NCBI GenBank assembly: GCA_965649825.1
Contig: OZ287696.1
Coordinates: 1,770,081 to 1,834,080 of the forward strand
Direction: 5' to 3'
DNA: 64,000 nt
Origin: Penicillus capitatus
Taxonomy: Eukaryota > Plantae > Chlorophyta
Shown here: in pieces, positions 19,943 to 64,000 of the stretch
How positions within the stretch are numbered: the first letter of the stretch is position 1
Layout of the letters: every line of letters starts with the position of its first letter
The notes under the pieces: generated by a model
Database searches by the model: none
The model's input: the letters and a program-made list of their open reading frames with translations, nothing else
Told to the model about the DNA's origin: nothing
Translations under genes and position numbers: made by a program

Positions 19943-21255
19943 ATGGAAATCGCGGCATGGCGCTCTTTTATGGAGGGCCTCATGTCAAAGGTCGCAGAAC
20001 TCAATCTAGACTTCTCGACACGCTTCTATATTTTTGTCGCTGGGCACTTTGTCCTGTACTACTGGATGCGCTATGTGGTGGCACCGGCACGTCCTGGTTG
20101 GCCGCGTGGCATGCGAGCCATGATTCTGACTCCATTCCTGACGGTCATGTGCGTCTTGTTCGACGCACAGAAGAATGAGGAAGCCACAGCAGCAGTGTAC
20201 AGCATTCTTGGGTTTCTCTGCATGACACCGGCAAAGATCATCTCATTTTGCATGAATCGGGGCCCGATCGTCAAGGCATACGACAGCAAGAGCACACTCG
20301 CTTTCGTTCTCAGTCTCCTCTTCCCGGTCTCGGTCGCCTTCGATGAAAAGAAGGCGGCAGACGAGAACGAGGAGAAGGCGACTGAACCACATGCCTACAA
20401 AGATGCTCGCTTCTCTGTTCTTCGCTTCGAAAAGACTGAGCGCTGGATGCGAGTGACAACGATGATTTTCCAGACGATCGGGAAAGTACATCAATTTCTC
20501 CTTCCCTTTGCTCCCAACTCATTCATGTCTTCGTCATTAGACCATATTCATGTTGACTTTGAGACACAGTGCACAATACTTTCACGGATCTGGACAGGAT
20601 TTTCTGAGAAATGTGTGCATCGGATGGTTCTGCTACGCATACGGGTCAACAATTGAAGATACGGTCAGTTTGATCTTGCTGCTTACAGCCAATGTGAAGA
20701 TAAACCATAACTTTGACCGTCCATGGCTCTCCCAATCTGTCAGAGAATTCTGGTCTCGTCGCTGGAACATCCTTGTCTCTGAGATGCTGAGAGGTCTGAG
20801 TTACGAACCGGTCTGCGAAGGTAAGGTCACACTCGTATCGCCTTGCGTTAGGATTCTGGACAGGTTGCTGGGTGCGCGGATCGAAGTACTTCGGAAGAAG
20901 AAAGCCGTCGGGACTGCGCAAATCCATGGCTCTGATCGCAGCGTTTGCGGCCAGCTGCTTCTTTCACATCGCCCTTCTCATGTTTATATCTCCGTTTCGA
21001 ATCTGCCTCTCGCACGGATTCTTCTTTGTGGCGAATGGCCTCGTCATCGTCCTCGAGGATGTCGCCAAATTCTTCGTGTCGAGGCAGAAAGGGGGACTTG
21101 CGTTATCCAGAAGCATTCCGAAGCTGTTCTGGCAGATCTATGCTGTTTCCACCGTTATTGTGTTGGGTCATTTCTTTTTCTGTCCGGAATTTGTAGAATT
21201 CGGATATGCGGACATCATGATGAACGCAGACCTTTCCTCTTCGCCGCGCAATTAA
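19943..21255 (+). CDS. MBOAT wax-synthase/sterol-acyltransferase-like protein, copy 1 (3 exons)
   Basis: Multi-TM; HNFDRPWLSQSVREFWSRRWN and AFAASCFFH (catalytic His); two short introns. Confidence 0.88.
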
Positions 21256-22745
21256 CTGTATGTTCATCAACTTCTTTAAATCTGTCTTTGTGCTGGGCAA
21301 CACTTGTTCGATGACGTACCTCATTCGATTTCGATGCATTTCAATCCTCCGAACGAGAGGTATTGTAGAGGGGCACCAGATAATGACGGACTGCAAATAA
21401 CCCAGAAGATCCAGCCTGTCTGCTATGGTATATGTAGATCGCATAACTGTCTGTTGCTTTGAAGGGCTTTGCTTAAGGTAACCAGGTTTGCAGACAGTTT
21501 GCCTGAATCGGCTTGACATGTACTACCAGCTTTTCGTAAAGAGCTGAGAGAAGAGATGGATCGTGCCTAAGGCCATCTCAAGTTCAATGGTCCGAAGAGA
21601 TCGTTGTTCTCTAATGTCCTCCATCGAACCATCCATTGGACGTGAGTAGATCTCGAGCAAACAAACTCTTCTTTGCATGGCAGTGCCACAATCAGACTGC
21701 AACAGCAGCAGTGGTGTGCCAAGGATCCTTCCTGCATTCAATTCGGGATCGGATCGAGATGGGAGATGGCATTGTTGAAAGTGTTAAACCGGCCAGAAAT
21801 GACGAACCAGAAGATACTTTGCTCACCTGCTTTTAGGTTCCGCCGTGTCGGGAACAAAGGGAATGCCGATAAAAGGTGGCACAACTGCAGGCATTTTGCG
21901 ACGCAAGAAACTATCGTGCTAACAAAAAACGCATCCTTGTGGGCGTGTTCGGAATGGACTGGAAAAGGTTGACGGAAAACGATGGAAAGTGCTTCTCGTA
22001 TCAAGTGCAGCTGATCTATACCTGAGCTAGATACACACGCTCGTATAAGCAGCATTCTTTTTTGGACATCGTCGAGGGTCTCAAATTGCCCAGGGCGTTG
22101 AAGACCATCGATATCGACAACCAGGAGGATATAGGTCACGGTCAATACATTCATCCGAAAGATCTCAACAAGCCGACCGATCCAGAAATCCGTTGACCAG
22201 ACAGACAACCACAACGTCAGTTTTCATTTCGACTACACGTGCAATGTTGAAATGCGTTCGGTGTCGCAGTGCTGCTAGAAGGGATGGGGAGACCCTGCTG
22301 TCATCGGCGCGATCACATAAAAGAGATTCTCACCTGTCTTTTCAGTGACGGCCGGCCGAATGTGGAGAAAACGTGCTTTTGCCATATATCGACCCAGAAT
22401 CGACGTCCTACACGCTTACAGTGTCATCTTCAAAGCGATTCCAAACAAGACGACAACATCTCTCACAAGTGAACCCTCAACGACATCAACCGAGTATGTG
22501 ATCTTCTGCAAAGGCAAGAGACCGAGGACAGGTATGGGTATGTTAGCACACGGGGTGGTCGGCAGCTGAGAGATGATGGTTTTGATGCGTCATTGATGTT
22601 CATGTGGCGGTGCATGAAAACAAGATCTCACCGCTGTCACTGTCTTTCGTTTTTAACGCCTTTAAATCTAGTGGTGTTGTTGTTGGACGGCCGCTGTCGT
22701 GCACCGTCCCCTTCCCTCTCTTCTTTATTCTTTACGGACAGTGTC

Positions 22746-27644: not shown

Positions 27645-30600
27645 ATGGGAGACGCTGAGCTCATTGCCGAAACACGCGCGTCACTCGAGGCCATGCGCAA
27701 GCCTGAGCGACCCGACTCTTCAAAAGTTCAACTGCAGACGCAGAAACTCACGACGACGATAGAGGAGTATGCGACACGGATTCAAGAAATAAAGGAGAAA
27801 ACGGCCCATCGGAGGGGAAACCGTAATGAACGCTCGCCCGAGGAACGTGACCTGCTGGACGCGCTGCACAAAACAAAGAACGAGAGACAGAGAGCTTGGG
27901 TACCATCCATTCTGTCCATCCATATTTTATGAGGCTTGTGCGTGTCAGCGAGAAAAGCAGTCCATCCGCAATGCTCTAAATAAAGCCAATCAGGTTCGCG
28001 AGTCTGCTCGGGTCAAAGTGCGTCAGATAAAAGAGAATTCAAGGGTCTCCAGTATCGAAGAGATCGATGGTCAAATCAAACGATTGGAGGAGAAGATCAA
28101 TAGCTCCGAGTTAACGGAAAAGGAAGAGCAGGAGAGCATCGAGAACATCCGTCAGTTAGTGAAATCCAGAGAGACGGTCCGCAGTTTGCGGCGACAGCTG
28201 GATGACATGCAGTCACAGGAGAATAACAGCGAGGATCTTATGGATCAGTTAAAAGACATCGATAGCAAGATGGATGAATGCACGGCACAGGAGAAAGAAA
28301 TAAACAAACAGTTGGATGCCATTCAAAAGAAGAGGGAAGAGGAAGACATCGATGTGCATGCGCTGATCGAGGAGAAGGAAGAATGCTGGCAAGTGCTGTG
28401 TGCACTTAGACAGAAGCGAAAGGAGATCAATGATGCCTTCACAGTCGAGATGGATCACTACAAACAGGAGCTAAAGGAATATCACAAAGCTAAAAGAGAA
28501 CTCGAACAGAAACTGCAAGAAATCTGTTGTTTTGAGTGCGATGAGGAATGTGGGTCTGTGTTGTGGCAGGGAAAATGAAACGAGGGCGGAGCAGAAAAAA
28601 GAAACACACGCCAGCAAAGTGATCGAGAGACCCAGGCAAAAGAATACCTCGCAGACGGAGACAAAGCTGCAAGCAGAGATGAGACCGTCTCCAGTGAGAG
28701 AGAGCTTTGCAAGGCAGGAAGAGAGAGAAAAAAAGAAAGAAGAGCAACGTCGGCAACGTCTGAGACAGATGGAACAATCTAAGTATCAGGAGAAGGTATC
28801 CTTCCTTTTGAAGTGGTATGGATGGATAGAGTGATAAGAGATGATGTAGGCAGAGACCTGTGTTGATCTCTTGAAATACTTGATGCTGTTAAAGCCAGCA
28901 GCGAAGGAAGAGGAATCTCTGCCGTTACCACAAGAGTCGGTGCCATCCCAAATCCCACCGCCTCTGGAAGCTGGCATGAAGCCGCTGAAGAAGGGAGATA
29001 ATGAACACGATGCTTGGATGATGGGAGGAAAAGGAAAGAAGAATAAGCATAAGAAAATGAAAAAGTGTGGAAAGGTGGAGAAACCAGAAGATAAGATTTT
29101 GATGCATTCTCGGCAGACGCTCAAAGCATTTGAAAATCTTAAGGTGGCTGCGCCTGACACATTGGCTGACGTTCCTTCCTCTGTACGGAAACTTGAAGAG
29201 CTGAAACTGTACTACGAGGCAAAGAAGGCAAATCCAGATTTCTCTCTGTCGGAAAAGAAAACGGCCAACACTGATGCGACGACGCTAGAGACAGTTCTGC
29301 AAAAGACTTCTCCCGGTCAAACAGAAGAGCCCCAAGAAGAGGACACTGCGAAGAAGGCTCCCAGTCAAACAGAGGAGTTCCAGGAGGAGAGCCCTGTGCC
29401 CAAGACATTTGGTCAAGCAGAACAGCTTCAAGAGAAAAACCCTGTGCTAAAGACACCTGCTCAGAAAGAAGAGCACCGAGAGGAGGACACCGTGCAAAAG
29501 GCTCCTCCTCGCAAAACAGAAGAGCTCCAAGAAGAGAGCCCCGTGCCGAAGACACTTGGTCAAACAGAAGATCTCCACATGGAGAGCTCTGTGCCTAAGG
29601 CTCTCTGTCAGACAGAAGAGCGTAGAGAAGAGAACCCCGTGCCGAAGACACTTGGTCAAACAGAAGATCTCCGAGAGGAGAGCCCTGTGCAGAAGGCTTC
29701 CCATCACACAAAATATCTTCGAGAGGAGAGCCCTGTGGAGAAGAAAACACTTGGTCAAACAGAAAAACTTCAAGAAGAGAGCCCCGTGCCCAAGACTCAA
29801 TGTCAAACAGAAGATCTCCAAGAAGAGGACACTGCAAAGAAGGCTCCATGTCAAACAGAAGAGCTCCAGGAGGAGGACACTGCGAAGAAGGCTCCATGTC
29901 AAACGGAAGAGCTTCAAGAAGAGAGCCCCGTGCCAAAGACACTTGGTCAAACAGAAGATCTCCAGGTGGACAGCTCTGTGCCTAAGGCTCCCCATCAAAC
30001 AGAAGATCTCCGAGAGGAGACCCCTGAGAAGAAGACTCCCCGTCAGACAGAACAGCTCCAAGAGGAGAACACCGTGCTAAAGACACCTGGTCAGACAGAA
30101 GATCGCCAAGAGGAGGACACCGTGAAAAAGACCTCTCCAAGTCAGACAGAAGAGCTCCAAGAAGCGGACGCTGCGAAGAAGGTCCTCCGACAAACAGAAG
30201 ATTGCCAAGAAGAAAACACTCTGCTAAAGACACCTGCTCAGACAGAAGAACGTCGAGAGGAGAACCCCGTGCAGAAGGCTCCTCCTATTCAGACGGATGA
30301 GCGCAGAGAGGAGAACACTCCACAGAAGACACCGGCTCAGACAGAAGATCGCCAAGAAGAGGACACCGTGGAGAAGACGCTTGATCAGACAGAAGAACGC
30401 CGAGAAGAGAGCCCTGTGACAAAGACGGCTCCTTGTCAAACAGAAGAGCTCCAAGAAGAAAACACTCTGCTAAAGGCAACTTCCTGTCAGACAGAAGAGA
30501 GCCAAGAAAAGAACCCTGTGCTGAAGGCTCCTATTCAGAACGAAGAGAGCCAAGAAAAGAACCCTGTGCAGAAGACACCTGGTCAGACAGAAGAGCGCCG

Positions 30601-30844
30601 AGAAGAGAACATTGTGCAGAAGACACCTGGTCAGACCGAAGAGCGCCGAGAAGAGGGCACTGGTGCTGAGGCAAAGAAGGTCGATCCTCCATCTGTGGAG
30701 ATGCTTCATCAAAGAGTCATTGGCACAGACAGCACCATCCCCGACAGTTGTCCACAGAAGACTGGCGATTCTGTTGTTCGCTGCACGTTCACTATGAAAG
30801 GAGAAACAGAGATTCTCTTGGAGCTCCGTTGCGTGGATCGCTGA
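27645..30844 (+). CDS. Bfr1/proton-pump-interactor-like coiled-coil protein with long acidic repeat tail, multi-exon
   Basis: SIEEIDGQIKRLE..EEQESIENIRQL.KSR and LMHSRQTLKAFENL..VP..KLEELKLYY; the final exon is an open 657-aa frame. One exon junction near 28530-28570 is uncertain. Confidence 0.7.
29318..30660 (+). repeat. Coding minisatellite: ~28 units of 48/51 bp (16-17 aa, QTEELQEESPVPKTLG-like)
   Basis: Units counted directly in the 28871-30844 translation; all indels keep the frame. Confidence 0.95.
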
Positions 30845-41231: not shown

Positions 41232-43287
41232 ATGTCTGTCGTGGGCACTAGGGTGCGAGGTCTTCCATCCGTCCAAACACCATCGATACCTCGACGACGT
41301 GCATTCTGCAACCCCTTTCCGCTTAAGGTTCGTTATCAGAAGTGAAGAAGCGCGTATAAAGTGAGAGACAGTGGAAGGGGTCAGGTCGATGGGTCAGCAA
41401 AGATCTGCGTCCGACAGAGTTCGTCGTTCGTGCCGCTATGTTTGATAACTTGACGAAGTCTTTAACGAAAGCGTGGGATCTCTTACAGAAGGACTCGAAA
41501 TTGACGCCCGAGAACGTCAAAGGGCCCATTCGCGAAGTTCGTCGGTGAGCAAGTTGCATCATCGCTCGATTGCGACAAACAACGACGTCTTTGCCAGGGC
41601 CTTGCTGGAAGCAGATGTCAGTCTTCCTGTCGTTCGGAGTTTTGTTAAGAGAGTCGAGTTGAAGGCACTCGGTGTGCAAGTGAAGAGGCCGAAAGATGCG
41701 ATCGGCGATCTGAATGGGTCACTCTATTCGTCTAGGTGATCAAGGGTGTCACACCCACTGTGCAGTTCGTCAAGATCGTCAGCGATGAGCTTACGGCACT
41801 GATGGGCGGCGAGCGGTTCGTTCTAGACGAGCCCGATGACGGTCCACAAATCGTGCTGATGGCCGGTTTGCAAGGTGTGGGCAAAACGACCGCCTCGGCG
41901 AAAATTGCCCATTACCTGCAGCAAAAAGAGAACAGAAAAGTGGCAGACGGCAACAGGATCTCCGCCTTCATGTTGTTTGCTGGATAGGTTCTGTTGATTG
42001 CCGCGGATGTGTATCGCCCAGCCGCCATCGATCAGCTCGTGAAACTGGGAGAGAAGATCGAAGTGGACGTCTACCATTCCGATACAGAACGCCGTCCTGT
42101 TGCCATTGTGGAGAAAGGCATCGCCTATGGCCGATCGATGGAGGCAGACACATTGATCGTGGACACAGCCGGTCGCTTGCAGGTGATATCTCTGTCGAGT
42201 GCAATTCTGTGAATAGATGGGTGAACGCGGGCATAGATCAATGAAGAACTGATGAATGAGCTTCGTGAGATGAAAGCGACGGCCAAACCGTCGGACATCC
42301 TCTTGGTGGTTGATGCCATGACAGGACAGGAGGCAGCAGCACTTGTCAAATCCTTTAACGAATCACTCGAGCTGACCGGTACCTGTCTGCCTCTTCATCG
42401 CAGCAAAGCAGATGCGTATCCCCAGGCGCTGTGCTGACCAAGATGGATGGGGACAGCAGAGGAGGCGCTGCCTTGAGTGTGTATGAAGTATCCAAGAAGC
42501 CGATTAAGTTTGTCGGGACAGGAGAGAAGATGAATGCACTGGAGCCGTTCTATCCAGAGCGCATGGCGAGTCGCATCTTGGGAATGGGTGATATGCTGAC
42601 GCTCTATGAAAAAGCAGAAACGGCGATTAAGGTATGGACCTGCGACAATGGGCCCCTCTTCGCCAGTGATGTTGCTCTGCAGGAAGAAGATGCAGCAGAG
42701 ATGGCAAGGAAGATGATGGAGGCCAAGTTTGACTTCAATGACTTTATTAAGCAGTATGAGATGGTGTCCAGAATGGGCTCCATGGGAAATCTCATGAAGC
42801 TGATGCCAGGAATGGCAGAGGTCTCAGAGAAACAGATCTTTGCCGCCGAGAAGCAGTTCAAGATATACGATTCGCTCATCAAGTCCATGCGAAGAGTCGA
42901 ACGCTCCAATCCCGATCTCCTGGCCAAGAGTTCAGCTAGGCGACGTCGCATCGCCAAGGGTGCGGGAAGATCAGAGTTCGATGTCAACAGCCTGATCGGA
43001 ACGTTCGCTGCCATGCGGAGCTCGATGCAGAATCTCACACGTCTCATGGCCCTGCGACAAGGAGGCACAAGTAAACACACCTCTCACACGGACGACGTCG
43101 TGTCATCAGAAAGATCACATCTGATTATGTAGATATTCCTGGTATGCCGTCGCTGTCGAATGAGGAGCTGCTCAATTCCATGGTGGAGAGCTCCATGAGC
43201 TCCATGAGCTCCATCCCGCCAGGAATGGTCCGTCGTCGCAAGGATCGCCGTACGAAATCTGCGGCGCAGATGAAAGTGATGCGTTGA
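41232..43287 (+). CDS. cpSRP54: Chloroplast signal recognition particle 54 kDa subunit, multi-exon
   Basis: Transit peptide then MFDNL; GLQGVGKTT, DVYRPAA, DTAGR, TKMDGD, FYPERMASRILGMGD; M domain; C-tail GMVRRRK. Confidence 0.95.
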
Positions 43288-49664: not shown

Positions 49665-49890
49665 GGTATTTCTTCGAGGCTTCTGGAAATAGCGAACGTT
49701 TAGCAACAATCAATCAACAAACAGAACTCGCGGTCAAATGCACAACGTCATTACTTTTATGATGCCCGTCAATAATAATAGTATTGCGTTCTGAATGTTC
49801 ACGGTTCTTTTCGTATTGAATTGCCCCTTCTAGACACATTCTCGCCTTTTCTGACCGTTCTCGTATCGAGAGCGTGTGACAGTTACGAAG

Positions 49891-52800
49891 ATGCATCCCC
49901 GAGCCGCCGACGAAGGGTCAAGCAGTGGAGGGCCGCCGGAGAGAAGCTTTGTTTCCGAAAAATCTTCTTCCCTTACTGAATTTGACAAAGCCAAAATGTC
50001 GCGTAAACTCTCTCGCATGCACAGCATCGTGGACACGCCTTCGTTAGTCAAAGCCTATAACGACGAGCCCGAAAAAACGAAACAACAGATTCTGGCTGAA
50101 TGGATCTACCGTTACAGAGAAATCCAAGACAAAAGCCAAATCTCAGATGCTATCCGTGAGCTCGCAGAGCTGACGAAAATCAAACCGCGTGCCGATCAGG
50201 ACTTAAGTCTTCTCAGATTCATCTTCGGCGAGATCCGTGATCGCTTGAAGCCAAGGGGATATCCCGAAAAGAATGTCGGCAAAGCGCTTTACGAAGCACT
50301 TCTCTGGACGCATCCAGATCACTTCCTGAATGAATCGCTGACGAAGATGACTCAAAACGTTCTGTCGAGTCTGTCATCGAGTCCACAAATGTACAACACC
50401 ATCTTTGAGGACTACGAAGCCACTTTCCTGTCACTGAGACAAGCGATTGTCAGATTGCGTGATCTATCGCATGCAGAGGTGTCGTGGACCGACTGGCAAG
50501 CCCTTCGAAAAACGGTTAAGGAGAAGAGACAGACGCTGATGAGCTCATTCAAATACTATCCAGTCTCTTTCCACTTCAATATTATTGAAAAAGGCATCGA
50601 ATGCCTCGACGTCACAGATCTTCCATTTGTCGCACAGTTATTGAACTGTGCTAGCTGCGATTCGTGCAGTCTGATGAAACTGGTCCGAGGTTCCAGTTCA
50701 TCAAATGCGCACGGGGATGCGTCGTTCTCGAGAAGAGGGATGGGTGCAAACTCCGCACAGTGGTACCAGCTGTACTGCGAGTTGGAAGATGCCAGACTGA
50801 AAACACTGAGAAACAAAACAGACGCCGTGAAGTTTCTTCGCAAATATGATGAACTGAAAAAGAGACAGGAAACGATCGTCAAAGGCGAAAGTCGGACTGC
50901 ATTGAGATTTGGCATTATCCACGAACTATGTCAGCTTTCACTCCACGGAACCGACGACGTTCGACAAGAAACAACAATGAAGCTGCTTGAGCTTTCAAGC
51001 ACTGATGTCAGGAACAACGATTGGATAAACGAAAGGGTCATCTTCGAAGCGCTTCTTGAAGCGGTGTATCGTGTGCACAAGAAAGGAAATCTGAGGAGAG
51101 AAACGGCGGAGGCATTGCGTGAGATGACTAAGATGGAATCGCCCTTGCAGCAAGAAGTCGTAGTCGAGTGGCTGGGTAGTGTGACTGTTGAAGACAAGCT
51201 CAGAATGCAAGACGACGAAATGACGGCAACGTGGCAACGGAACCTTCTGTTCAATGCCATTGCACGACAGGTGGGGTACATTCCATTTGCCGTAATCCGC
51301 AAAAATATCGAAGGATTGAAAAAAGCATACACGTCAGACTCCTTTACGACAGTACGTGCTGATGAGTAGAGAGGTCGGGACTAAAGAGTTCGTTTGTTGA
51401 TGCAGGTGCAACCCGTGTTTGATCGCGAGTCCTATGCACAAATTAACGATATGCAACATTACATTGTCCATTACGATAAGATCGAAGACCATGGCGAAGA
51501 TGGTCAACCTAGATGTGCTGCACATGAGAACCACCATGCCACAGAGGACTATGACCGAAGAGAGAGGCCTCACAGAGAGATAGCCCTCGAGGACTTGTTC
51601 GGAGACCGCAAGCCTGAGTCGGGTGGTAGAAGTGCGGAGAGACGGAAAGTCTTGCTGTACGGAAACCCAGGCAGCGGAAAGACATGTATCGGAAAAGTGA
51701 TAGGCTACAAATGGGCAAACAACAGGTTTAAGGATGACGTGGATGTTGTTTACGTCGTCCCCGTCATCAAACTTAACAGTTCTAATCTCGAAAGGCAAGA
51801 ATGGAAGACGCTCGCGGAGGCTGTGACCAACATATGCTATTCGCATCAAAACAAGCCAATCACTGACAATCTTTTGACACAAGTGGATGACGATCTTGAC
51901 GACTTACGCACCTTGCTCGTGCTCGACGGAGTTGATGAAGGCGATGAAAAAGGAAAGGATATGATCACGTTGGCCAAAAAACGTCAGTGCAAGATTCTTA
52001 TGTTGAGTCGTCCGTACAACCTATTCGATGAGAAGGCATTCACCGAATTGGAGGTGGAATGCCTTGGCTTTAGAGAAGAGCAGCTCAAAGCGTATATAAA
52101 CAAAGAGTTGCCGAAGGAAGGAAAAAAACTCATTGAGCGTGCGAAGAAAGAAAAGGATATGTGGAGATCCATGCACAACCCCGTGAAGGCATGCATCGTT
52201 TGTTTACTGTGGAAGGAAGGAGAGCCGGCGCTTGTTGATGAAGATCGAAAGACAAGCGATTTCGCAATGTATGGAAGAATATCTAACTTCATGTGGTCGC
52301 GTTTTGCAAAAAGGCCGAATATGGGCGAGGTGTCTAGAGACGATATTTTCCAGCGTCTCGAGTCGATTGCTTTTGAGGCTTTTAGGAAAAAAACAACTCT
52401 CGTCAATCAAACTCTTGTCGAAGAACATGCTTCGACGGCATTCATAAGGGAAATACTAAGAGATAGTGGTTTCTTGTTGTACAACATCGAAAAGATGCAG
52501 TATCAATTTCCGCATAAACATGTCCAAGAGTACTTCGTTGGAAGATACGTTGCCCGAACTCTTGAAGGAGAAACGGTGAAAGATCAAACGTCGGTGGCGT
52601 TTTTGACAAACGGAAAGTACACAGCGGATAATAGAGACGTGATTTCTTTTATGACTCAAGCCATCGCACAAAGCCGGCGAGGTATTGGACTCCAGAAACT
52701 GTTTTCGTTTATCGATCAGGAACCACGAGAGATCATCGGAGTCCGACACTTTCTACTAAAGCTTTGTCTTCTTGACAAATTTCTAGCGGGATTGTGGAGA

Positions 52801-53970
52801 TCGGAAATCGATGAGACCACAAGCAATGACGCAGCATCCCAGATCATTCACACGTTGACCCTCATCATCAAGGAATTGAAACCTGGTAACGACCTGTGGA
52901 ATATCATCATCACTAAACTGAGAGAATATCCAAACGTCTTGAGACAATATCACGACGAAGTGATCGGTGCTCTGACCGAAGAGTCTAAGCTCCAAGAGGT
53001 GGTGGATGCGGATTGTTTTGAAGATATCGTAATGTTGACGATATTTTGCCCAAGACATACGGCCGATTTGGTGGACGCGGCACGAGAGAAACTTGAAGAC
53101 CAATCAAACCCAAGGATCCGTTTAGCAGGCCTGTGTATGGTAAGGGATATCCTTGGACATCATCAAGACCGTGCCAGAGATTTGGTTCCGATGTTGAGGA
53201 AAGGGTGCGAGGACAGCGAGAGAGATAACCGCAGAATGACGATGTTCTTTGTCCGAAGAGTGTGCGCACTAACGCATAACGTTTCTGGCGGTCTCTTGGA
53301 GGTGCTCAAGAGCGGATTCCAAGACGAAGACGCGTCCGTGAGAATCGCCGCAATGATGACAGTCAAGTGTTTGGCAGTGCACATTGAAGGTGTATCCGAA
53401 GAACTTTTCTCACTGATAAAAGAAGGATGCAAAAGTACGAACAAGGACATGCAAATCATAGCCCTCAGAACGCTCGGGTATCTCCGGTCGGAAGATAAGG
53501 ATCCAAAGAAGTTTGACGAATTGATTGAAGAGGCAGAAAAAAATGAGGACGAGAAAGTGAAAAGCGCAGCAGAATCAAGTAAGAAACCAAAGGACAAGAA
53601 GCGCATGTGCGAATGTAAGGAAGAGACGAAGGATCTGTCTGACGATACACAGAAGATGATTGAAAACTTATGCAAAAAGGAGAAAACAAAGCCTCGCGAA
53701 GCTTCGACCGTCAATGATTTGACAGATCTCTGGCAGAAAGCTGTGGAAGCAGAAAAGGAATTTGATGTCGGAGAACTCGTGCCACACCTGATCCAGTTAC
53801 CTGTTACGGTGGAGCAAACTTCGAAGAAACAGCAGCAAAAGCCAGTGGTGCACACCGATGGTTCGGATGCAATGCAACTTTGTGACCGTAACACAGTGAA
53901 CAACCTTATCACCGCGATCGAGGAGCGTTTCGAAAAGATGTATCCTGGCATTCTGAATCTTCTACGCTAG
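49891..53970 (+). CDS. ~1340-aa STAND NTPase: helical N-terminal domain + NACHT + HEAT-like repeats (2 exons)
   Basis: Intron 51352-51405 joins two long ORFs in frame. Walker A YGNPGSGKT, Walker B LLVLDGVDE, LSRP, VECLGF, winged-helix YQFPHKHVQEYF; ~40-aa repeats of type D...VR.AA..L. Confidence 0.9.
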
Positions 53971-54795
53971 GCGTGAGCACGCACCATCTAGTTTATTCTC
54001 AGCTAGGAACGCCATTCAGAAACACCCGTCCTTATCTGCTCTGCCCGTTTTCTTCACCCGATTAACCTTGTCTGAACATCTCAAAACTGTTACCCCATTT
54101 GCTATGTTTGACAGTTACCTTTCTTAGTGGACAGTGATTTAGGCCAGTTTTATCATGGGCACTAAGGGTGAAAGTGCAGAGTTTGTAAACACAGTCTTTT
54201 CTCCGATGGATGTCGAAACGCTAACAACGGTAGTATTTTGCTCTGTAAGTGGCGTTGACCGACATTTGTTGGAAATCTCATCTCTCTTCTCGATCCGATC
54301 CCGAATTGAATACAGGAAAGATCCTTAGCACACCATTACTGCCGCTGCAGTCTGATGGTGAAGATTGCCATGTAGAGAAGAGGTCGTTGGCTCGATATAT
54401 TCTCAACTCCACTAAACGGTTCGATAAATGTTAGTAAAGAACAGCCACTTCTTCCGACCATTATACTCGAGATTGTCTTAGGGAAAACAATCTCTTCCGT
54501 CAGCTCTTTACAAAGATTAGTTGCGTTTGTCAACCCGAATCCGCGACGTAAACTGCCTGCAAACCTGGATACCTTGAGCAAGACCCTTCAGAGCAACAAA
54601 CAGTTATGCGATCGATCGTACGGCATACAGAAAAGTATTGTAAAGAGGCACCGGATAATGACTGACACTGTGAATAAACCCAGAAGATCCAACCGTTTGA
54701 AGGATTAGAGTTTATCGGAATCGATTGAGACATCTCATCGAACAAGTGAAATAACCCAGCACAAGGCAGATTAAAGCAAGTCGAAAAACAAACAA

Positions 54796-56113
54796 TTAAT
54801 TGGGAGGCACGAAGGAGAGGCCTGCGTTCATCAACACGTCCACATATCCGAATTCTACAAACTCCGAACAGAAAAAGAGATGACCCAATAAGGTAACGGT
54901 GGAAACGGCGTAAATCTGCCAGAATAGCTTCGGAATGCTTTTGGAAAATGCAAGTCCTCCTTTCTGCTTGGAGACAAAGAATTTGACGACGTCCTCGAGG
55001 ACGATGACGAGGCCATTGGCCACAAAGAAGAATCCGTGTGAGGGGCAGACTCGAAACGGAGATATGAACATGAGAATGCCCATGTGAAAGAAGCAGCTGG
55101 CCGCGAACGCTGCGATAAGCGCCATGGATTTGCGCAGTCCCGATGGCTTCTTCCTCTCGAAGTACTGCGATCCGCGCACCCAGCAACCTGTCCAGATTCG
55201 TAAGTAACACATGGCGTAACCAGAAGAGGCCTTACCTTCATAGATCGGTTCGTAACTCAGACTTCGCAGTATTTCAGAGACAACCATGTTATACCGACGA
55301 GACCAGAGTTCTCTAACAGATTGGGAGAGCCATGGACGGTCGAAGTTGTGGTTTATCTTCACATTGGCTGTAAGCAGCAAGACCAGACCGATTGTATCTT
55401 CGATTGCAGACCCGTATGCATAAACGAACCATCCGATGCACACGTTTCGCATAAAAATCTGTCCAGATAAGTGAAAGTATTGTGCACTGTGCCTCAAAGT
55501 CAACATCAACATGATCTAATGATGCAGGCATGAATGAATTGGAAGCAAAGGGAAGGAGAAATTGATGTACTTTCCCGATCGTCTGGAAAAGCAGCATTGT
55601 CACTCGCATCCAGCGCTCAGTCTTTTCGAAGCGAAGAACAGAGAAGCGAGCATCTTTATAGGCATGCGGCTCAGTCGCCTTCTCCTCGTTCTTACCCGTC
55701 ACCTTCTTTTCATCGAAGGCGACCGATACCGGGAAGAGTAGACTGAGAACAAAAGCGAGTGTGCTCTTGCTGTCGTACGCCTTGACGATCGGTCCCCGAT
55801 TCATGCAAAAGCAGATGATCTTTGACGGTGCCATGCAGAGAAACGTAGCAATGCTGTATACGGATGTTGTGGCTTCCTCATTCTTCTGTGCGTCGAACAA
55901 GATGCACATGATTGCCAGGATTGGAGCCAGAATCATGGCTCGCACTCCTCGCGACCAACCAGGACGTGCCGGTGCCACCACATAGCGCATCCAGTAGTAC
56001 AGGACAAAGTGTCCAGCGACGAAAACATAGAAGCGTGTCGAGAGGTCTAGATTGAGTTCGGCGACCTTTGCCATGATGCCCTCCATAAGAGCGCTCCATC
56101 CCGCGGTTTCCAT
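54796..56113 (-). CDS. MBOAT wax-synthase-like protein, copy 2
   Basis: Same three-exon structure and motifs as copy 1; frames intact across both introns. Confidence 0.88.
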
Positions 56114-56699
56114 CAGAACAAACACTGCGACTCAGGTTGTAGTCCGCCCACTGTCCAGAGTTTCCTGTTCTTGTTCAGCTGTGCCTCGCGCACTCCCCTG
56201 ACGACAGAGAGACGCAGACAGCGATGGCAGCGAAGGTGGCTCGCAAGATACAAGACGCGAATGATTGGTGCTGCGTGTATATTAGTCACCCCTCGTGTTG
56301 ATGGGACGTCGATGGATTGAAGCCATCGACCGCTTCAATAGACGATCTATTGTCACCTTCTATGGAGCTCTGCTGCTCAAAATCGTGTTCTGGGTACACG
56401 TCGCTGTTATCGCACGGAGTATGTTTTTTTGTCTGGCTCTGAAGCGACGCGGGCTTGGAATTGCGATCAAGGAAAGCCAAGATAGACGGAGGCGAAGCGC
56501 AACAAGCCTCATTGACGGTTTAAGAAAACCTCGGACGGACGACCGCCCCATCGGACTGTATAGTCAAAGGGAATCAACGCCGTCCATGACGCTATTGAGT
56601 ATCTTTCTATCTGTCTCGGACGGACGTTAACACTCGCCCCTCATCGACATTTCAAAGAGTGAGACTCGACAGATGAAACAGTAATTGGCACGAGAGGGT

Positions 56700-57300
56700 G
56701 GATGTGCAGAACATATCAATGTAAATACCCAGATGTTTGTGTTCGTGTGCAAATACTCGCGGCAGTATTTTATCCGAAATCGGCATTGTGATGTATGTGT
56801 CTACGTAATGCTTGAGTTCTTGCCATAGGGCTTTCGAGGTTCATGTCTCCGGGGCTGCGTTCACTGTGCAGAGCTCTCCTAGGTTAATGAGATCGAGAAG
56901 GTGTTCGCCGCAGTACAGAACGTGCTTGTAACAGAAAATGTTAGCTGCTTAAGCAACTGCTGTGCGCACGTGGCCATGGGCGGTTCCCGAATCTTCAGAC
57001 CGAGGTGCATTAAGATGCATCGTTCGCGGTTAGCTTTGCATAGACACGTGCGCTAAAGGTGAGGGGTTCGAGCAAAACGCCAAACTTCTTGCGAGAGAAG
57101 TAAGTTAGGGAAATATGGTTGGCAAAACATTAACTATTGTAGCCATCAAAAGACGCATATTCTTCTGTAACATCTCTCATTTTTGAGTTGCATTCAAGTG
57201 TTTTCTGTTGCTACTGTTCGCGTCGCATCGACTCTGACATGTGTTAAGTGCACTAAAAGATACCCGACAGAAGGTGTCTCGAGTACTTATTGCAGAAGGT
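56700..57300 (-). mobile_element. Possible hAT-like transposase remnant
   Basis: SFDGY, TANDAS and YCGEHLLDLI (CxxH) appear in DDE order but are broken by stops; spacing is short. Confidence 0.3.
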
Positions 57301-57599
57301 CAATATCGGCTGAGAGGAACAGGTTTCATCATGACTGTGAATTAAGAAACGTGTTCGAATATTCAGTCAGCGTTCTTTTTCTGAACTTCGAATAACTCGT
57401 GGAAATGCTAACTTTAAGGCTTCTAGTTGCGATAGGAATAACATTTACAGCACGAGAACTTTGCCGAGAACGGATTTAGAAGTGAGGGTTGAATTCTAGC
57501 GTTATTTCAGAAAAATGTGGACAGAATTCAAGGCCTTTTTTCGAACATATGTATGTGCTTGAAAGGTGAGTGAAGAGTGATTCGACTAAAACTTCGAGC

Positions 57600-58750
57600 C
57601 GCATGACTAAGACGCATGATAAACAAGGTGTGCTTCTGCCTACAGGTCCTGTTCAAGTAGCTACGATGACATGGATGGACTTTAAACCCGTTGAAGGCGA
57701 GATTTGAAACGTCCGAAGTAGATTCCCTCTGCCGTCGTTTCATTGCTGAATGAATCGAATTGGACTCGGGTCTCGTCACGAAATTGGACGAGCTCTCATT
57801 ATGTCGAGCAACAAACAACAACAAGCGCTCATTCTTCTACCTTTAATTCGACTTGACAGGTTCGCTTGGAAACTCAGAGACTCGACAGTGAACAGGGGCC
57901 TTTGTTGAAAAGGCTCCAACAGATTTTGACACTCCCAAATTCAGGGAGACGTGGAATTAAGTTATCAAAGAGGTTGCAGAACGGATTGTGAAGTAAGATA
58001 TTTATGCGAAGATGAAGACCTCGAGATTGAACTCGACGCATCAAGAGACGGATATGGAGCGGTTTTGATGAGTGTCAGACGGCCCATTGCTTTCTTTAGC
58101 CGAAGAGCTACAAAACAATAGAAGCACACTTCAGATTTAGAAATCGGCGTAGTACTGAAGGCTCTTCAAGCGTTCCAGATTTTTATCGCATATCGACCAG
58201 TCAAGATGCAGACTGACAATTGGTCCGCATACCGCATTGCAATTTTGTTGAAAAGCGGAGCGTCCCTTCTGAATCGCATCGAAGAGGTTCTTTATTTCAA
58301 TTCAAATGTCAAATTCATTGCGGGAATACAACACCTTAGCGAATTTCTCCAGCAGAGACTTGTATATTGCTACAGTTTGGTATCGAAGGCAGGAGAGGCC
58401 ATTATGACTAAATAGACACAATTGATCAGGATATCGAGCGTGTTGAGCTTTTATAAGTACGAAAAAGAGCATGTGGTTATTGTGCCATTAGAGCAATGTT
58501 TTGTTGAAGGAACTCAAATGCAAAAGAATGGGAAGAGAAGTGATGATGTTGATAGTTGCGACGCGTGCAAGAGATGACGAAAAAAAAAACCTCGGGGAGA
58601 ACTTCTTGGTCAACGAAAGGCTGCCGAGATCTGTGCTGTGGTTAGCCTAGACTTCAAAGGGCGGAAAAAGCCACCAAGGGACGCTAATCGAAACACTTAA
58701 GTGTAACAGCAGACAGACTTAACCGATTGATGAAATCCATCCCGATGGAG
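57600..58750 (+). mobile_element. Degenerate Ty3/Gypsy pol remnant (RT-RNase H-IN)
   Basis: ELDASRDGYGAVL..RPIAFFSR..DLEI..LKAL..F..MQTDN (58025-58220); MDFKPV/RFPLPS upstream; CDAC and VVSLDFKG downstream. Confidence 0.78.
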
Positions 58751-59989
58751 ACCTGTTCGACTGCCGAAGTGCAGGTGGTGAAAATATGGGAAGATAGAAT
58801 ACTTCCTACGTGATGCATAATAAAGTTCTTAAGTCGAGAGCTTAAACTTGTGTTAAAAAGACATCAATTACCAGATAGCAGCGCCATGTCATCAAAGCAG
58901 TAATGGATTGGTGGAGAGAGCGATACATAGTCTTATAACCTTATCCAAAAAATGTGTGTCGGCAGACAGCGATCTTAGGCAGCCTTTAAAAAGCATGAGA
59001 CTTTTAACGAAACACCTTACGAAATTACCTCATTCTCAACGAATGCGCTACGCTACAGAAATTCTTAAAGGGGCAGGATAAGTGAAGAGGAACTTCAGAA
59101 GGCAAGAAAGGCTGCAGGTTTGAAGACAAGAATCCCGCCGAGAAATACGGCAACGTAGACGGCAGAAAGATATTATGTCAAAATGATGATGTCTGTGACG
59201 GAAGCTCAAAACCAAAACCGCGTGTACGTGAGAAGTCACAGAAGATGTGACTCTTACTGCGAAAGCTGTATTGGATGTCGGTGACTGTATCTCGCGTTTC
59301 CTCTTCTGCATCAAGTACGAACGTTTTTATCGTATCGCTAACGCAGACTTCGCTGGTTTACGCAGCGACGCTCCTCAAAGCATCGCCTTTTTCGTGGGCG
59401 GCAGAAGCAGCTAGTATTTGCGCTGCGAACGCCATACTAAGCAAAGGCCGTAAAGATACCGGTTCCCAATTCGAGAACCAGAACGTTTTCCGTTAACCTT
59501 TTCGCTAAACAGAAGAAGATCACAGCGTCGGCAGAAAGAACTCAGAGCTTGCCGGAAATTCTGACAGTTCTTACGGTGCCTAGGGTGGACGATTTCGAGC
59601 AGAACCGTCGCTGACAACCGAAGTCTATGACGCTTCTTCGGTCAGCATTTCTACAGGGTGGACACGATTGCATCAGACAACTGGGCTTCCTAGTATTGTA
59701 GAGACTTCTGAACCGAAGAAAGTCAACAAGGCATGGATGAGCGAGCTGTACTGCGTGTCTCGATATTCCTCGCGAGATGCAACGAATGGCATAGAAGCCT
59801 CGATCCAGCTCATTATGCAGGACAATAGCCACAGAGTTCGGCCACGTGTCTTCGAGCCGCGGCAGGCATGTGAAGAAGCGTGCTATTCTTAACACAACGT
59901 CAGTATAAATCTGAGGTCGTTGTTCGCTTTTCTGATTTTTGTTTGTCGTTGTTGTTGTTCCGACCATCCGAGGTCACAAAACATCCATC

Positions 59990-60336
59990 ATGGCGCGTGG
60001 GTTGCGTTCTTGTGTCCTGCTTGTGTTGGCAGCAATTATTATCTCATGTGTGTCAGCTCGCCGTAAGCTACCTCTCTTGCCTCGAGGGAACTTACGAACT
60101 TTCGTTGTCTGCATGCAGTCCAGAACGACATGCTTGCAACGAAGCGCATTGAGGATGGCACCAATGGCCACGAATACGGCCATGGCGCAGTTGACGCCGA
60201 CTGGAATCATATCGGCGAACCGGGACGTTTGCTTAAGAAAGACTATGAAGGACCTCCGAAAGAAGATCCGGGCAGACGCCTTCTTATGGAGCCACATTGC
60301 GAGGATGGAAGCCTTCCTGATCCTGTCTGCCCGTAA
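59990..60336 (+). CDS. 96-aa secreted prepropeptide-like protein (2 exons)
   Basis: Signal peptide MARGLRSCVLLVLAAIIISCVSA. 56-nt intron 60063-60118 (GTAAG..GCAG) joins in frame to ..TKR..EPGRLLKK..DPGRRLL..CEDGSLPDPVCP*. Confidence 0.72.
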
Positions 60337-61293
60337 CTTGTCGCCAATGTCTAAGCCGACTCGTGGCGGGGCGTCAAGCAGTATTTGCCATACTTTGTTT
60401 GAACCGAGCAGTATTTCATGAAGAGTCCATTTGTTTGTTCAGTGTTTTGCGCAACGTAAACGATGTTTCGCTTTTATGTGTTGCAAGTGGGTCAGTCTCA
60501 GGAAGAAGAACGTCACATCGATTTCTGCCACATCCCATGCTGTAGAAGCGCTATGTTCGCTTCTGGTTTTTTTTTTTCTTTGCGACAACAGACAACCTAG
60601 CATTATTTTTGGGAACATCCATTGCCTTTAACAACAGTTGCGACGAAATCGAATTCCGCGTTCGCGAGAATGACTGCCTCCAACGATCGACGTCTACAAA
60701 ATTCGCGATTCAAGACGTATGCGACCTTCTCGTTGTCACGCCGCACGCGTATCCGAATTCATAGACAACAAGAGAATAGGGTCTGCCAAATCCGAAGATA
60801 TGAACGGATGAAAGCTTAGAAGCGCTGTTAGGCGGACGACGTCGTTAGGACATCTCTGCAAAAGCAACGACAGCAGAAACCTCGAAGATATCACATCCTA
60901 ACCCAAGTACTGTGTGTCTTACGAATACAGATGCTGTTGCATTTAGAGGACGCGTGATGTACAGTGACCCTCTTCCCTCTCGACCAGACATTCCGATTAG
61001 ACATAGAACGAAACAGAATGCTCAAATATCATCCACATGCGTCTGGAGGCCTCTGCTAAGTGTTCTAACCTTCTGGTCTACCACAAGCATTCATCTCGGG
61101 CGGTCTACAGAATCTGTGATCTGTGTGCATTCGCAAGGATGGACGCATAGAAGAGGTAGCATGAGAGACCATCCGGCGATCTCTTGTAGATGCCGGGATT
61201 AACCTGCTTGCGGGTCGATCGAACGTGCACCTCATCAACAAGTGTACCCCAACATGAAGACAGGTTCAAAAAAGTTGCTGAACTGATAAACAA

Positions 61294-62610
61294 TTAACTG
61301 CGAGGCAGGGAGGACATGCCTGCATTCATCGTGACGTCCGCATATCCGAAATCCACATATTCTGGACAGAAAAGGAAATGACCCAGTACAGAAACCGTGG
61401 AAACGGCGTAAATCTGCCAGAATAGCTTCGGAATGCTTTTGGAAAATGCAAGCCCCCCTTTCTGCCTTGAGACAAAGAATTTGGCGACATCCTCGAGGAC
61501 GACGACGAGGCCATTCACCACAAAGAAGAATCCGTGTGCGGGACAGACTCGAAACGGAGATGTGAACATGAGAACACCAATGTGAAAGAAGCAGCTGGCC
61601 GCGAACGCTGCGATCAGAGCCATGGATTTGCGCAGTCCCGATGGCTTCTTCCTCTCGAAGTACTGCGATCCGCGCACCCAGCAACCTGTCCAGATTCGTA
61701 TGTAACACATGGCGTAACCAGATGAGGCCTTACCTTCATAGATCGGTTCGTAACTCAGACTTCGCAGCATTTCAGAGACAAGGATGTTCCAGCGACGAGA
61801 CCAGAATTCTCTGACAGATTGGGAGAGCCATGGACGGTCGAAGTTGTGGTTTATCTTCACATTGGCTGTAAGCAGCAAGACCAGACTGACCGTATCTTCA
61901 ACTGCAGACCCGTATACATAGACAAAAAGTCCGACGCATGCGTTTCTCAGAAAATCCTGTCCAGATCCGTGAAAGTGTTGTGCACCGCGTTTCAAAGCCT
62001 CTGAGAATATGATCTAATGATGCAGACATGAATGAGTAAGATCAAAGTGAAGGAGAAATTGACATACTTTTCCGATCGTCTGGAAAAAAATTCTTGCGAC
62101 CTGCATCCAGCGCTCCGTCTTTTCGTAGTGAAGCACAGAGAAGCGAGCATCTTTGTAGGCATGCAGCTCTGTCGCCTTCTCCTCGTTCTTATCCGTCACC
62201 TTCTTTTCATCGAAGGTGACCGATACCGGGAAGAGGAGACTGAGAACGAAAGCGAGTGTGCTCTTGCTGTCGTACGCCTTGACGATCGGGCCTCGATTCA
62301 TGCAAAACGCGATGATCCTTGCTGGTGTCATGAAAAGAAACTCAATAATGCTATACACTGCTGCTATGGCTTCCTCATTCTTCTGTGCGTCGAACAAGAT
62401 GCACATGATCGCCAGAACTGGAGTCAGAATCATGGCTCGCACTCCTCGCGACCAACCAGGACGTGCCGGTGCCACCACACAGCGCATCCAGTAGTACAGG
62501 ACAAAGTGTCCAGCGACAAAAACATAGAAGCGTGTTGAGAAGTCCAGATTAAGTTCTGCGACCTTTGCCATGATGCCCTCCATGAGAGCGCTCCATCCCG
62601 CGGTTTCCAT
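61294..62610 (-). CDS. MBOAT wax-synthase-like protein, copy 3
   Basis: Same three-exon structure and motifs as copies 1 and 2. Confidence 0.88.
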
Positions 62611-62856
62611 CAGATGAAACACTGCGACTCAGGTTGTAGTCCGCCCAGTGTCCAGAGTTTCCCGTTCGTGTTCAGCTGTGCCTCGCGCACTCTCCTGACG
62701 ACAGAGAGACGCAGACAGTGATGGCAGCGAAGGTGGCTCGCAAGATACAAGACGCGAATGATTGGTGCTGCGTGTATATTAGTCACCCCTCGTGTTGATG
62801 TGACGTCGGTGGATTGAAGCCATCGAACGCTTCAACGACCGATCCATCGTCACCGT

Positions 62857-64000
62857 ATGCCCCTCCGCAAAAAAGTTCGCTCCGCCGATAGTTTTAACGT
62901 TTTAGCTTCGTGGCTACAACAACCTAGCCACCTCGTCGGCGACAGTCAGCTAATAGAAAACTCGACTGGAAGTGCTTCTCTGGGCTATCTCTCGACTGCC
63001 GAGGATTTACTGAACGCCGACCAAAAGTCTGAACCTGGCACGCATCTCCGACACGACAGCTGCATTTCTCCATTCAGCCATCAGACACGAAAAGAGGGAC
63101 ACCGAACGCATCGCCAGGCGCATTCTCTTAGTGAAGGTATTTCTTTCTGTCGCCGCTTCACATCTGATGCACTGTACAGTTTCGTCGCGCGTTTGGCATC
63201 CAGGAGTGGAAACGCTGCTAACAGAGTACTACAAGGTAAGCCTTCGCTATCAAGGTATGAGATGATGGCGGATGTACAGTTGTTGGACACGACAGCCCCG
63301 AGGGACTCCTCGTTCGTCGCTGAGCGCTATCGCAAGTCGTTGATGGAGTGCCTGTTTGGTGCGTTGACCACAAAGCTGCCGACCTTTCTTCAGCTCCGCA
63401 CGATTTCCCAGAACTTTGGAGCATGGATGGATCGCTGCACGACAGAATCGCCAATAATTCTGTTGATTGCTCTGGTGACTGGGCTGCAGTTTCTGCGGTT
63501 CTTGTACATAAGCGTCGGGCTCCCACTCATCGTCTGCGTTGTATTGGGGAGTCTGGGACTCTTCATTTTGCAAAAAAGTGAGAAGAAGTACAAGGCATCG
63601 ATGCGCAAGAAAAACGACAACATCGCCACCCTCAGCGTATTCGAAGGCGGAAAACACGCAAACGCCCTTTCGAATGGAGCACGGTCTTATCGTACAGCGA
63701 ACCCCGCTGGTAAGTCCCCTTCTGCAATGCCCTGTATCCAAGTGTCCCGGCAGATGCGTCACAGCTTCCTCTGGCCAGTATCGAATGGTCTTCAGAGTTG
63801 AGGCGAGTCGCCGTTCCTGAGACCGATGGCAGCGATGCTTTTCAAGACACATCACCTCTTCAGAATCCACCGAATACCATCCATACGATGACAGAGAGCG
63901 AAATGCTTGAGCACGACATCCGGCAAATCCGGATAGCGCTTTTGGGATCCAGAGAGGGCGATTTAGTGCCACCATCCGGCAGCAATAACACAAGCTGGAT
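62857..64000 (+). CDS. Uncharacterised membrane protein, probably continuing past the window
   Basis: 314-aa open frame with two hydrophobic segments (IILLIALVTGLQFL; GLPLIVCVVLGSLGLFIL) and a GTAAG donor near 63710. Family not recognised. Confidence 0.45.

Follow-up and report, generated by a model that had tools for sequence, protein, structure and literature searches.

A candidate orphan gene for a small secreted pro-protein with protease-type motifs in a bryopsidalean green alga

Conotoxins and amphibian skin peptides are encoded by large multigene families in which a conserved prepro region is joined to a hypervariable mature peptide. Fungal Kex2-processed repeat proteins and alpha-factor-type pheromone precursors are small secreted proteins that contain a KR site and in which a processing motif is repeated. 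We know of nothing that has been described on peptide signalling in siphonous green algae. In plants, the processing sites of pro-pectin methylesterases (pro-PMEs) are RRLL-, RKLL- and RKLK-type motifs, and SBT6.1/S1P processes RALF23. Cleavage by basic convertases follows (K/R)-Xn-(K/R), in which n is 0, 2, 4 or 6, and cleavage by S1P follows R-X-aliphatic-Z, in which Leu is the best residue at Z (PMC8310232). PAM or PHM is widespread in chlorophytes and was reported for Chlamydomonas, Gonium, Volvox, Ostreococcus, Coccomyxa and Chlorella (PMC6529398). Amidated products are documented in Chlamydomonas, where the GATI-amide precursor Cre03.g204500, a 94-kDa member of a gene family, is amidated at its C-terminal -GRRR (PMC6919629). 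Our literature search found no paper linking PAM to the Bryopsidales.

The putative gene described here lies in a window of 64 kb, which is the whole stretch of DNA that was analysed, and it is predicted to encode a pre-pro-protein of 96 aa. Like the S1P/SBT6.1 substrates (RALF23, pro-PMEs and the animal SKI-1/S1P substrates), the product is predicted to enter the secretory pathway, and it shares two conserved R-X-aliphatic-Z motifs, one of which is the optimal RRLL. However, it has no sequence homology to RALFs, PMEs or known substrates, and it has Pro-Gly before Arg in both motif copies, whereas the S1P motif contains no Pro-Gly. With the PAM-dependent precursors (pro-TRH and Cre03.g204500) it shares a signal peptide, dibasic sites and, at its second site, Gly before Arg-Arg, but its first site is non-canonical for a convertase. 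In contrast to Cre03.g204500, the present gene is single-copy, encodes 96 aa and is unrelated in sequence. As in the conotoxin and skin-peptide genes, a near-invariant N-terminal part is followed by a tail in which 14 of 33 codons are altered while the Cys residues and the sites are kept; those genes have been compared over many sequences, whereas one gene with two alleles was compared here. The small, predicted secreted layout, the KR site and the repeated motif are shared with Kex2-processed and alpha-factor-type precursors, but the product has no repeated peptide units, as the repeat is confined to a motif of 5-6 residues, and it comes from an alga.

Host, homologue and gene model

The plastid-type omega-6 desaturase (FAD6) encoded in the window was nearest to two proteins of Caulerpa lentillifera (79% and 76%), while the values for other named chlorophytes were 63-71%. 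Since FAD6 was nearest to Caulerpa, the host was taken to be a bryopsidalean (siphonous) green alga, an ulvophyte. The GC content of the window was about 50%, and that of Ostreobium quekettii, Bryopsis and Caulerpa is 52.4%, 45.9% and 40.4%, respectively, so that among these Ostreobium comes nearest. Dymeclin, UBC6 and a pentapeptide-repeat protein are also encoded in the window.

A word-indexed search of 5.8 billion proteins returned one match to the product, the 67-aa protein P0001. It is located on a 488-kb contig (L001) of the ENA metagenome assembly ERZ25074695, and this contig was collinear with positions 50120-64000 of the window (13.9 kb) at 98.4% DNA identity. The same sample also held an identical UBC6 and a 99% identical FAD6. 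Because of this collinearity and these identities, the copy on L001 was considered to be an allele or a sister-strain copy of the gene. Ostreobium has been reported to be diploid with a heterozygosity of about 1.3%. A HMMER profile search of 1.84 billion representatives yielded nothing further that was genuine; P0127, a bacterial cell-surface repeat protein of 2796 aa, was rejected as a compositional match through its G/D/T-rich repeats. The product had no match in Pfam or among PDB sequences, nor in JGI metagenome contigs, which were scanned both for peptide patterns and for an exact 29-mer.

Splicing in silico of the region 59000-61500 gave a product of 96 aa, MARGLRSCVLLVLAAIIISCVSA / RLQNDMLATKR / IEDGTNGHEYGHGAVDADWNHIGEPGRLLKKDYEGPPKEDPGRRLLMEPHCEDGSLPDPVCP, which reproduced exactly the spliced gene model and the product of the original prediction. 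The coordinates of the gene and its features are listed in Table 1. The start codon has a Kozak-type context (cATCATGG). Codons 1-23 are signal-peptide-like, with the n-region MARGLR, a hydrophobic core of 13 residues (SCVLLVLAAIIIS) and then CVSA, and the predicted cleavage context has Val at -3 and Ala at -1 (V-S-A at -3 to -1). The signal peptide and KR site of the original prediction were both present, the former as called by simple rules and the latter kept in L001. After KR follow IEDGTNGHEYGHGAVDADWNHIGEP-GRLLKK, DYEGPPKEDP-GRRLL and then MEPHCEDGSLPDPVCP. The predicted loop of two Cys residues also held, with both residues and their spacing retained in L001.

Table 1. Position of the putative gene and its features in the window (L001, contig with the second copy).
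Feature	Position	Strand	Remarks
Lineage-specific 1.33-kb segment	59310..60640		Holds the whole gene; blastn and manual alignment
TATAAA box	59904..59909	+	86 nt upstream of ATG; identical in L001
Exon 1	59990..60062	+	ATG at 59990 is the first ATG after the TATA box
Intron	60063..60118	+	56 nt, GT-AG, GTAAGC...TGCAG; identical in L001
Exon 2	60119..60336	+	Stop TAA 60334-60336; L001 counterpart is the 67-aa ORF P0001
Lys33-Arg34	60142..60147	+	Dibasic kexin/convertase-type site; ends the 11-residue pro-piece; kept in L001
Motif copy 1, Pro59-Gly-Arg-Leu-Leu-Lys64	60220..60237	+	Identical in L001; next residue Lys65 is Glu in L001
Hypervariable stretch	60238..60326	+	Highest divergence of any 90 nt in the 13.9-kb alignment
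Motif copy 2, Pro75-Gly-Arg-Arg-Leu-Leu80	60268..60285	+	Nucleotide-identical in L001; both flanking codons changed
C-terminal Cys85-x9-Cys95 loop, CEDGSLPDPVC	60298..60330	+	CEDGSLNDPNC in L001; spacing and both Cys kept

The mature 73-mer is acidic, with a pI of 5.0 (4.6 for the other allele) and a net charge of about -6 to -7. It contains 15 Asp and Glu, 8 Pro and 9 Gly residues, as well as 3-4 His including HEYGH. AlphaFold2 gave a pLDDT of 54 and no secondary structure, and such a disordered, acidic product would be in keeping with a precursor of peptides or with a secreted protein that has no fold. The HEYGH at 60166-60180 (+) lies in the conserved N-terminal piece; it has an HExxH-like spacing with one more His (GHEYGHGAVDADWNH), and it could serve in metal binding or could be due to chance.

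Several features of the locus were compared with the rest of the window. TATAAA was found 5 times on the plus strand and 10 times on the minus strand of the 64-kb window, and it is strongly under-represented there; two of the five plus-strand copies (41355 and 59904) precede start codons by 83-86 nt. One of these belongs to the SRP54 gene, in which TATAAA lies 83 nt upstream of the ATG, and this is a hint that the alga keeps the distance from TATA to ATG fixed. A crude signal-peptide filter was passed by 3 ATG starts in the 64 kb on both strands, one of which is an internal Met within a membrane helix of the desaturase. Neighbouring introns have a length of 55 nt in the FAD6-type desaturase and of about 48-56 nt in SRP54, so the intron of 56 nt is typical here. 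The spliced frame had the best codon-usage score of the six frames (+12.8 bits), compared with 22 +/- 7.5 for real genes and -18 +/- 12 for intergenic DNA, with the score trained on 13 ORFs of the window and the intergenic control penalised by stop codons. The spliced frame was also the only overlapping frame that is open in L001, where it survived about 24 nucleotide changes. The intron-retained frame reaches a stop in L001, and this 144-aa frame was rejected as broken or truncated there; the antisense 107-aa ORF at 59974-60297 and the minus-strand 141-aa ORF at 59542-59967 were discarded on the same ground. All three indels between the two copies that fall within the CDS are of 3 nt, while 7 of the 25 outside the CDS are multiples of 3. 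No RNA family of Rfam matched in the window. Judged from these sequence features, the 96-aa ORF is probably a real gene.

The remaining ATG that passed the filter is at 39831 (-). Its frame runs down to about 39560, begins MARSFACPLLCVIFVLFSPS... and continues as a Ser/Pro/Arg-rich low-complexity ORF; it could be a second small secreted protein or a piece of a larger gene.

Absence from the sister lineage and divergence of the two copies

Contigs L004 and L005 of sample ERZ26696514 represent a sister lineage, with a FAD6 that is 94% identical to that of the window and a regional DNA identity of about 78%. The gene order on both contigs is that of the window: the 497-499-aa gene, the NACHT gene, MBOAT and the homologue of the 314-aa ORF, which was called as a 177-aa ORF in the sister lineage. 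At the site of the 1.33-kb segment, the sister contigs have about 36 bp of unrelated filler. The flanks could be aligned on both sides, as positions 59209-59309 of the window correspond to L004 7255-7362 and positions 60641-64000 to L004 7399-10733. Positions 54705-59208, which include the duplicated MBOAT copy, are likewise lineage-specific. In a tblastn search, the product had no match at the loci of the sister lineage. A mobile-element origin of the segment was rejected, as neither inverted nor direct repeats occur at its ends, a target-site duplication is lacking and the window contains it only once. The segment may reflect either an insertion in one lineage or a deletion in the other, and its absence from the sister lineage would fit a young gene of uncertain function.

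The original prediction had recommended a search for paralogues with the same motif spacing and had raised the possibility of an algal peptide signal. Neither tblastn of the product nor six-frame regex scans for G[RK]{1,2}LL, RRLL and PG[RK][RK] found a paralogue in the window or the related loci, nor did the called proteins of the metagenome with the other allele include one. As a conserved system, an algal peptide signal was thus not borne out, since neither a paralogue nor a family was found and the sister lineage lacks the gene at the syntenic site. On these searches, the candidate gene is an orphan limited to one lineage. To judge from sequence comparison, it is most likely a genuine but very young gene of single copy, and its predicted product is a small secreted pro-protein that carries conserved protease-type motifs and whose C-terminal half changes fast.

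The two copies hardly differ in the promoter region, exon 1, the intron, the first 119 nt of exon 2 and the 3' flank; in exon 1, L001 has A14V, I17V and one silent change. Of the last 33 codons, 14 are altered (13 replacements and 1 deletion) and there is 1 further silent change. Here pN and pS were 0.27 and 0.18, respectively, compared with 0.021 and 0.022 in the first 63 codons and with 0.001-0.016 and 0.005-0.04 in six neighbouring genes. The dN/dS of the tail was about 1.6, a value that is not distinguishable from 1 with two sequences. PGRLLK, PGRRLL, CEDGSL, DP and the final CP are nucleotide-identical in both copies. Both P-G-R sites are therefore unchanged in the only homologue, although they lie at the most variable stretch, and the original prediction, which called for G-R sites conserved in homologues, passes this check. 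The conservation outside this stretch carries little weight because only two sequences, which differ by about 1.6%, were compared. Gene conversion was rejected as the source of the variable stretch, as no donor was found within the 64 kb or the related loci.

Diversifying selection on the tail is suggested by these values. An arrangement in which the prepro region is conserved and the mature peptide varies suggests a role in recognition, not that of a conserved hormone, and candidate partners would be mates, self versus non-self, or microbes. The control haplotype pair L004 and L005 had a non-coding stretch of 90 nt with 15 substitutions (L004 7781-7870), which indicates that complex mutation clusters arise neutrally in these genomes. 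Since the control pair also has such a cluster, the variable stretch may itself be a neutral complex-mutation cluster. Dense multinucleotide clusters with small complex indels were also seen in non-coding DNA between the window and L001, at 56780-56900 and 59060-59120, and the background divergence around the non-coding clusters of the haplotype or strain pairs was about 1-1.6%. Such clusters bear on any inference of positive selection at a single site.

Processing motifs and competing explanations

The conserved unit is [E/D/I]-P-G-R-(R)-L-L, in two copies that are 16 residues apart. Of 200,000 shuffles of the mature sequence, 142 contained even one PGR(R)LL. The two copies are encoded by different codons (GGA CGT TTG CTT and GGC AGA CGC CTT CTT), so they do not come from a recent DNA duplication, and this argues for selection on the amino acids. 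The S1P motif was scored with X not Pro or Cys and Z not Val, Pro, Cys or Glu. Both R61-L-L-K64 and R77-R-L-L80 match R-X-aliphatic-Z, and RRLL80 is an optimal S1P-type site. The convertase motif fits at KR34 and RR78, and RLLK64 fits both the convertase and the S1P motifs. Arg61 alone fits neither motif, with Gly, Glu, Ile and Asn at P2, P4, P6 and P8, respectively. The S1P-type reading fits better because it explains both motif copies and the invariant Leu-Leu, while the amidation reading fits less well because it explains only the Gly of site 2. RRLL had been named a plant subtilase site in the original prediction, in agreement with the RRLL-type motifs that process plant pro-PMEs. Readings of RRLL as an apicomplexan PEXEL/TEXEL motif (RRLxx) or an oomycete RxLR motif were rejected as the host is a green alga; in the former case, the motif is also near the C-terminus.

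We favour a lineage-restricted bryopsidalean orphan gene that would encode a 96-aa pre-pro-protein with S1P-like processing and variable C-terminal pieces, and we give this reading a probability of roughly 0.45. A short two-exon transcript would be made from the TATA promoter, and the 23-residue signal peptide would direct the product into the secretory pathway. The remaining 73 residues, acidic (pI about 5), rich in Pro and Gly and unstructured, would be cut by subtilisin-type proteases at KR34 and at P-G-R-(R)-L-L. Most economically, an S1P-like enzyme would cut after RLLK64 and RRLL80 and leave non-amidated ends. Three pieces would be released: a conserved N-terminal one that is His-rich and acidic, a short and variable one from the middle, and a C-terminal one of 16 residues that contains a single disulfide loop. 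When the two known copies are compared, the latter two pieces change far faster than the rest.

In the original prediction, convertases would cut after Arg61 and after Arg77-Arg78, a carboxypeptidase would trim the ends and PAM would amidate the Gly, giving ..GEP-NH2, ..EDP-NH2 (..DIP-NH2 in the other allele) and a Cys-loop peptide. The homologue retains P-G-R at both sites, and the Pro-Gly-basic arrangement is the one that leads to the Pro-amide ends of TRH and calcitonin. Of the two amidation-type sites, the second (PGRR) stood as the only canonical Gly-dibasic site of the product, at which a convertase and amidation could act, but the first is a lone Arg followed by Leu, with no basic residue at P2, P4, P6 or P8, and lies off the convertase motif. 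The proposed cleavage at KK was lost, since KK is not conserved and reads KE in L001. Amidation would also leave the strict Leu-Leu after each Arg without a reason, and the product has no sequence relation to known precursors of amidated peptides. The wide occurrence of PAM and PHM in chlorophytes (PMC6529398) and the amidated product in Chlamydomonas, which the original prediction also mentions (PMC6919629), do favour the model; however, dibasic sites with potential amidation sites are present in 331 of the 771 signal-peptide proteins of Chlamydomonas (PMC6919629), so Gly-plus-dibasic motifs are very common in secreted proteins and poor predictors. The precursor-like layout of the original prediction held, but the amidation model as a whole was considered quite unlikely. 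A Pro-amide at site 2 may still be formed, as PAM or PHM is widespread in chlorophytes and Chlamydomonas makes amidated products. Since the conserved residues neither require nor favour amidation, the wider question of amidated signalling in algae is not opened by this gene. It would also be conceivable that the 73 residues are secreted uncleaved and bind cations, the cell wall or carbonate, with PGR(R)LL as a binding motif. The charge of about -6 to -7, the acidic, Pro, Gly and His composition and the lack of a fold predicted by AlphaFold2 agree with such a protein, and the GC content and haplotype divergence resemble those of Ostreobium, a limestone-boring alga in which binding of this kind could matter. 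Yet composition is the sole basis of this explanation, Ostreobium is not established as the host, and three conserved basic motifs that match protease specificities are explained more simply as cleavage sites, so we regard it as unlikely.

The S1P-like reading also has to be weighed against a proto-gene or chance ORF without function, in which a 1.33-kb insertion happened to bring an open frame together with a promoter-like box, and a neutral mutation cluster altered the tail. Absence from the syntenic site of the sister lineage, the single copy with no family, the similar non-coding cluster in the L004/L005 control pair, a dN/dS not significantly different from 1 and a codon score under the mean of real genes would all be expected from it. 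However, a TATA box, a Kozak context, a signal peptide and a typical intron coincide at this ORF, PGR(R)LL is repeated with different codons, and only the spliced frame survives about 24 changes, with all CDS indels in frame. Placed at random, the top mutation cluster of the 13.9 kb would hit the 291-nt CDS in about 2% of cases. A chance ORF thus appears somewhat unlikely. A further reading is a fast-diversifying, convertase-processed peptide signal, possibly Pro-amidated at site 2, with a role in mate, self or microbe recognition in one Ostreobium-like lineage, but we hold it to be quite unlikely.

If the gene is real and its product is processed, a siphonous green alga that is probably associated with corals would possess a secreted peptide peculiar to its lineage. 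This peptide would be a candidate recognition molecule, given how strongly two haplotypes that are otherwise almost the same diverge at this place. If the reading as a recognition peptide were true, siphonous ulvophytes would gain their first described peptide signal, with a layout resembling that of animal toxin and defence peptides. A real gene at this site would be very young and would already have a promoter, a signal peptide, an intron and protease motifs.

Other features of the window

Three paralogues of an MBOAT_2 acyltransferase are encoded in the window, at 19943-21314 (+), 54530-56125 (-) and 61294-62622 (-). The two minus-strand copies flank the peptide gene and are 89% identical to each other in DNA. 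The copy at 54.7-56.4 kb was considered to be a lineage-specific duplication because the sister lineage has one copy only. A possibility still weaker than that of a recognition signal is that the place of the gene between the tandem MBOAT_2 genes is functional, through acylation of the peptide, and not accidental.

The pol region of an LTR retroelement of the Ty3/gypsy order lies at 51-4154 (+), with aspartic protease, reverse transcriptase, RNase H and integrase; it extends over three overlapping ORFs, which makes a frameshift probable. At 9236-10264 there is a gag-like ORF that contains a CCHC knuckle. The 657-aa ORF at 28871-30844 (+) consists almost entirely of repeats of about 14 residues (QTEE-x-QEE-x-PV-x-KT), and its one Pfam match, G7C_GBD, was below the gathering threshold (E 1.3e-4, 22.2 bits against a cut-off of 27). 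The gene of the Ffh/cpSRP54 type at 41438-43132 (+) begins with MFDNL, and no obvious transit peptide follows its TATA box; it has at least 5 introns, each about 48-56 nt long. At 49876-53970 (+), a 497-aa ORF that belongs to no family is directly followed by an 858-aa STAND NTPase with NACHT/NB-ARC and HEAT domains, and this pair is kept in the sister lineage (L004 2210-6303).
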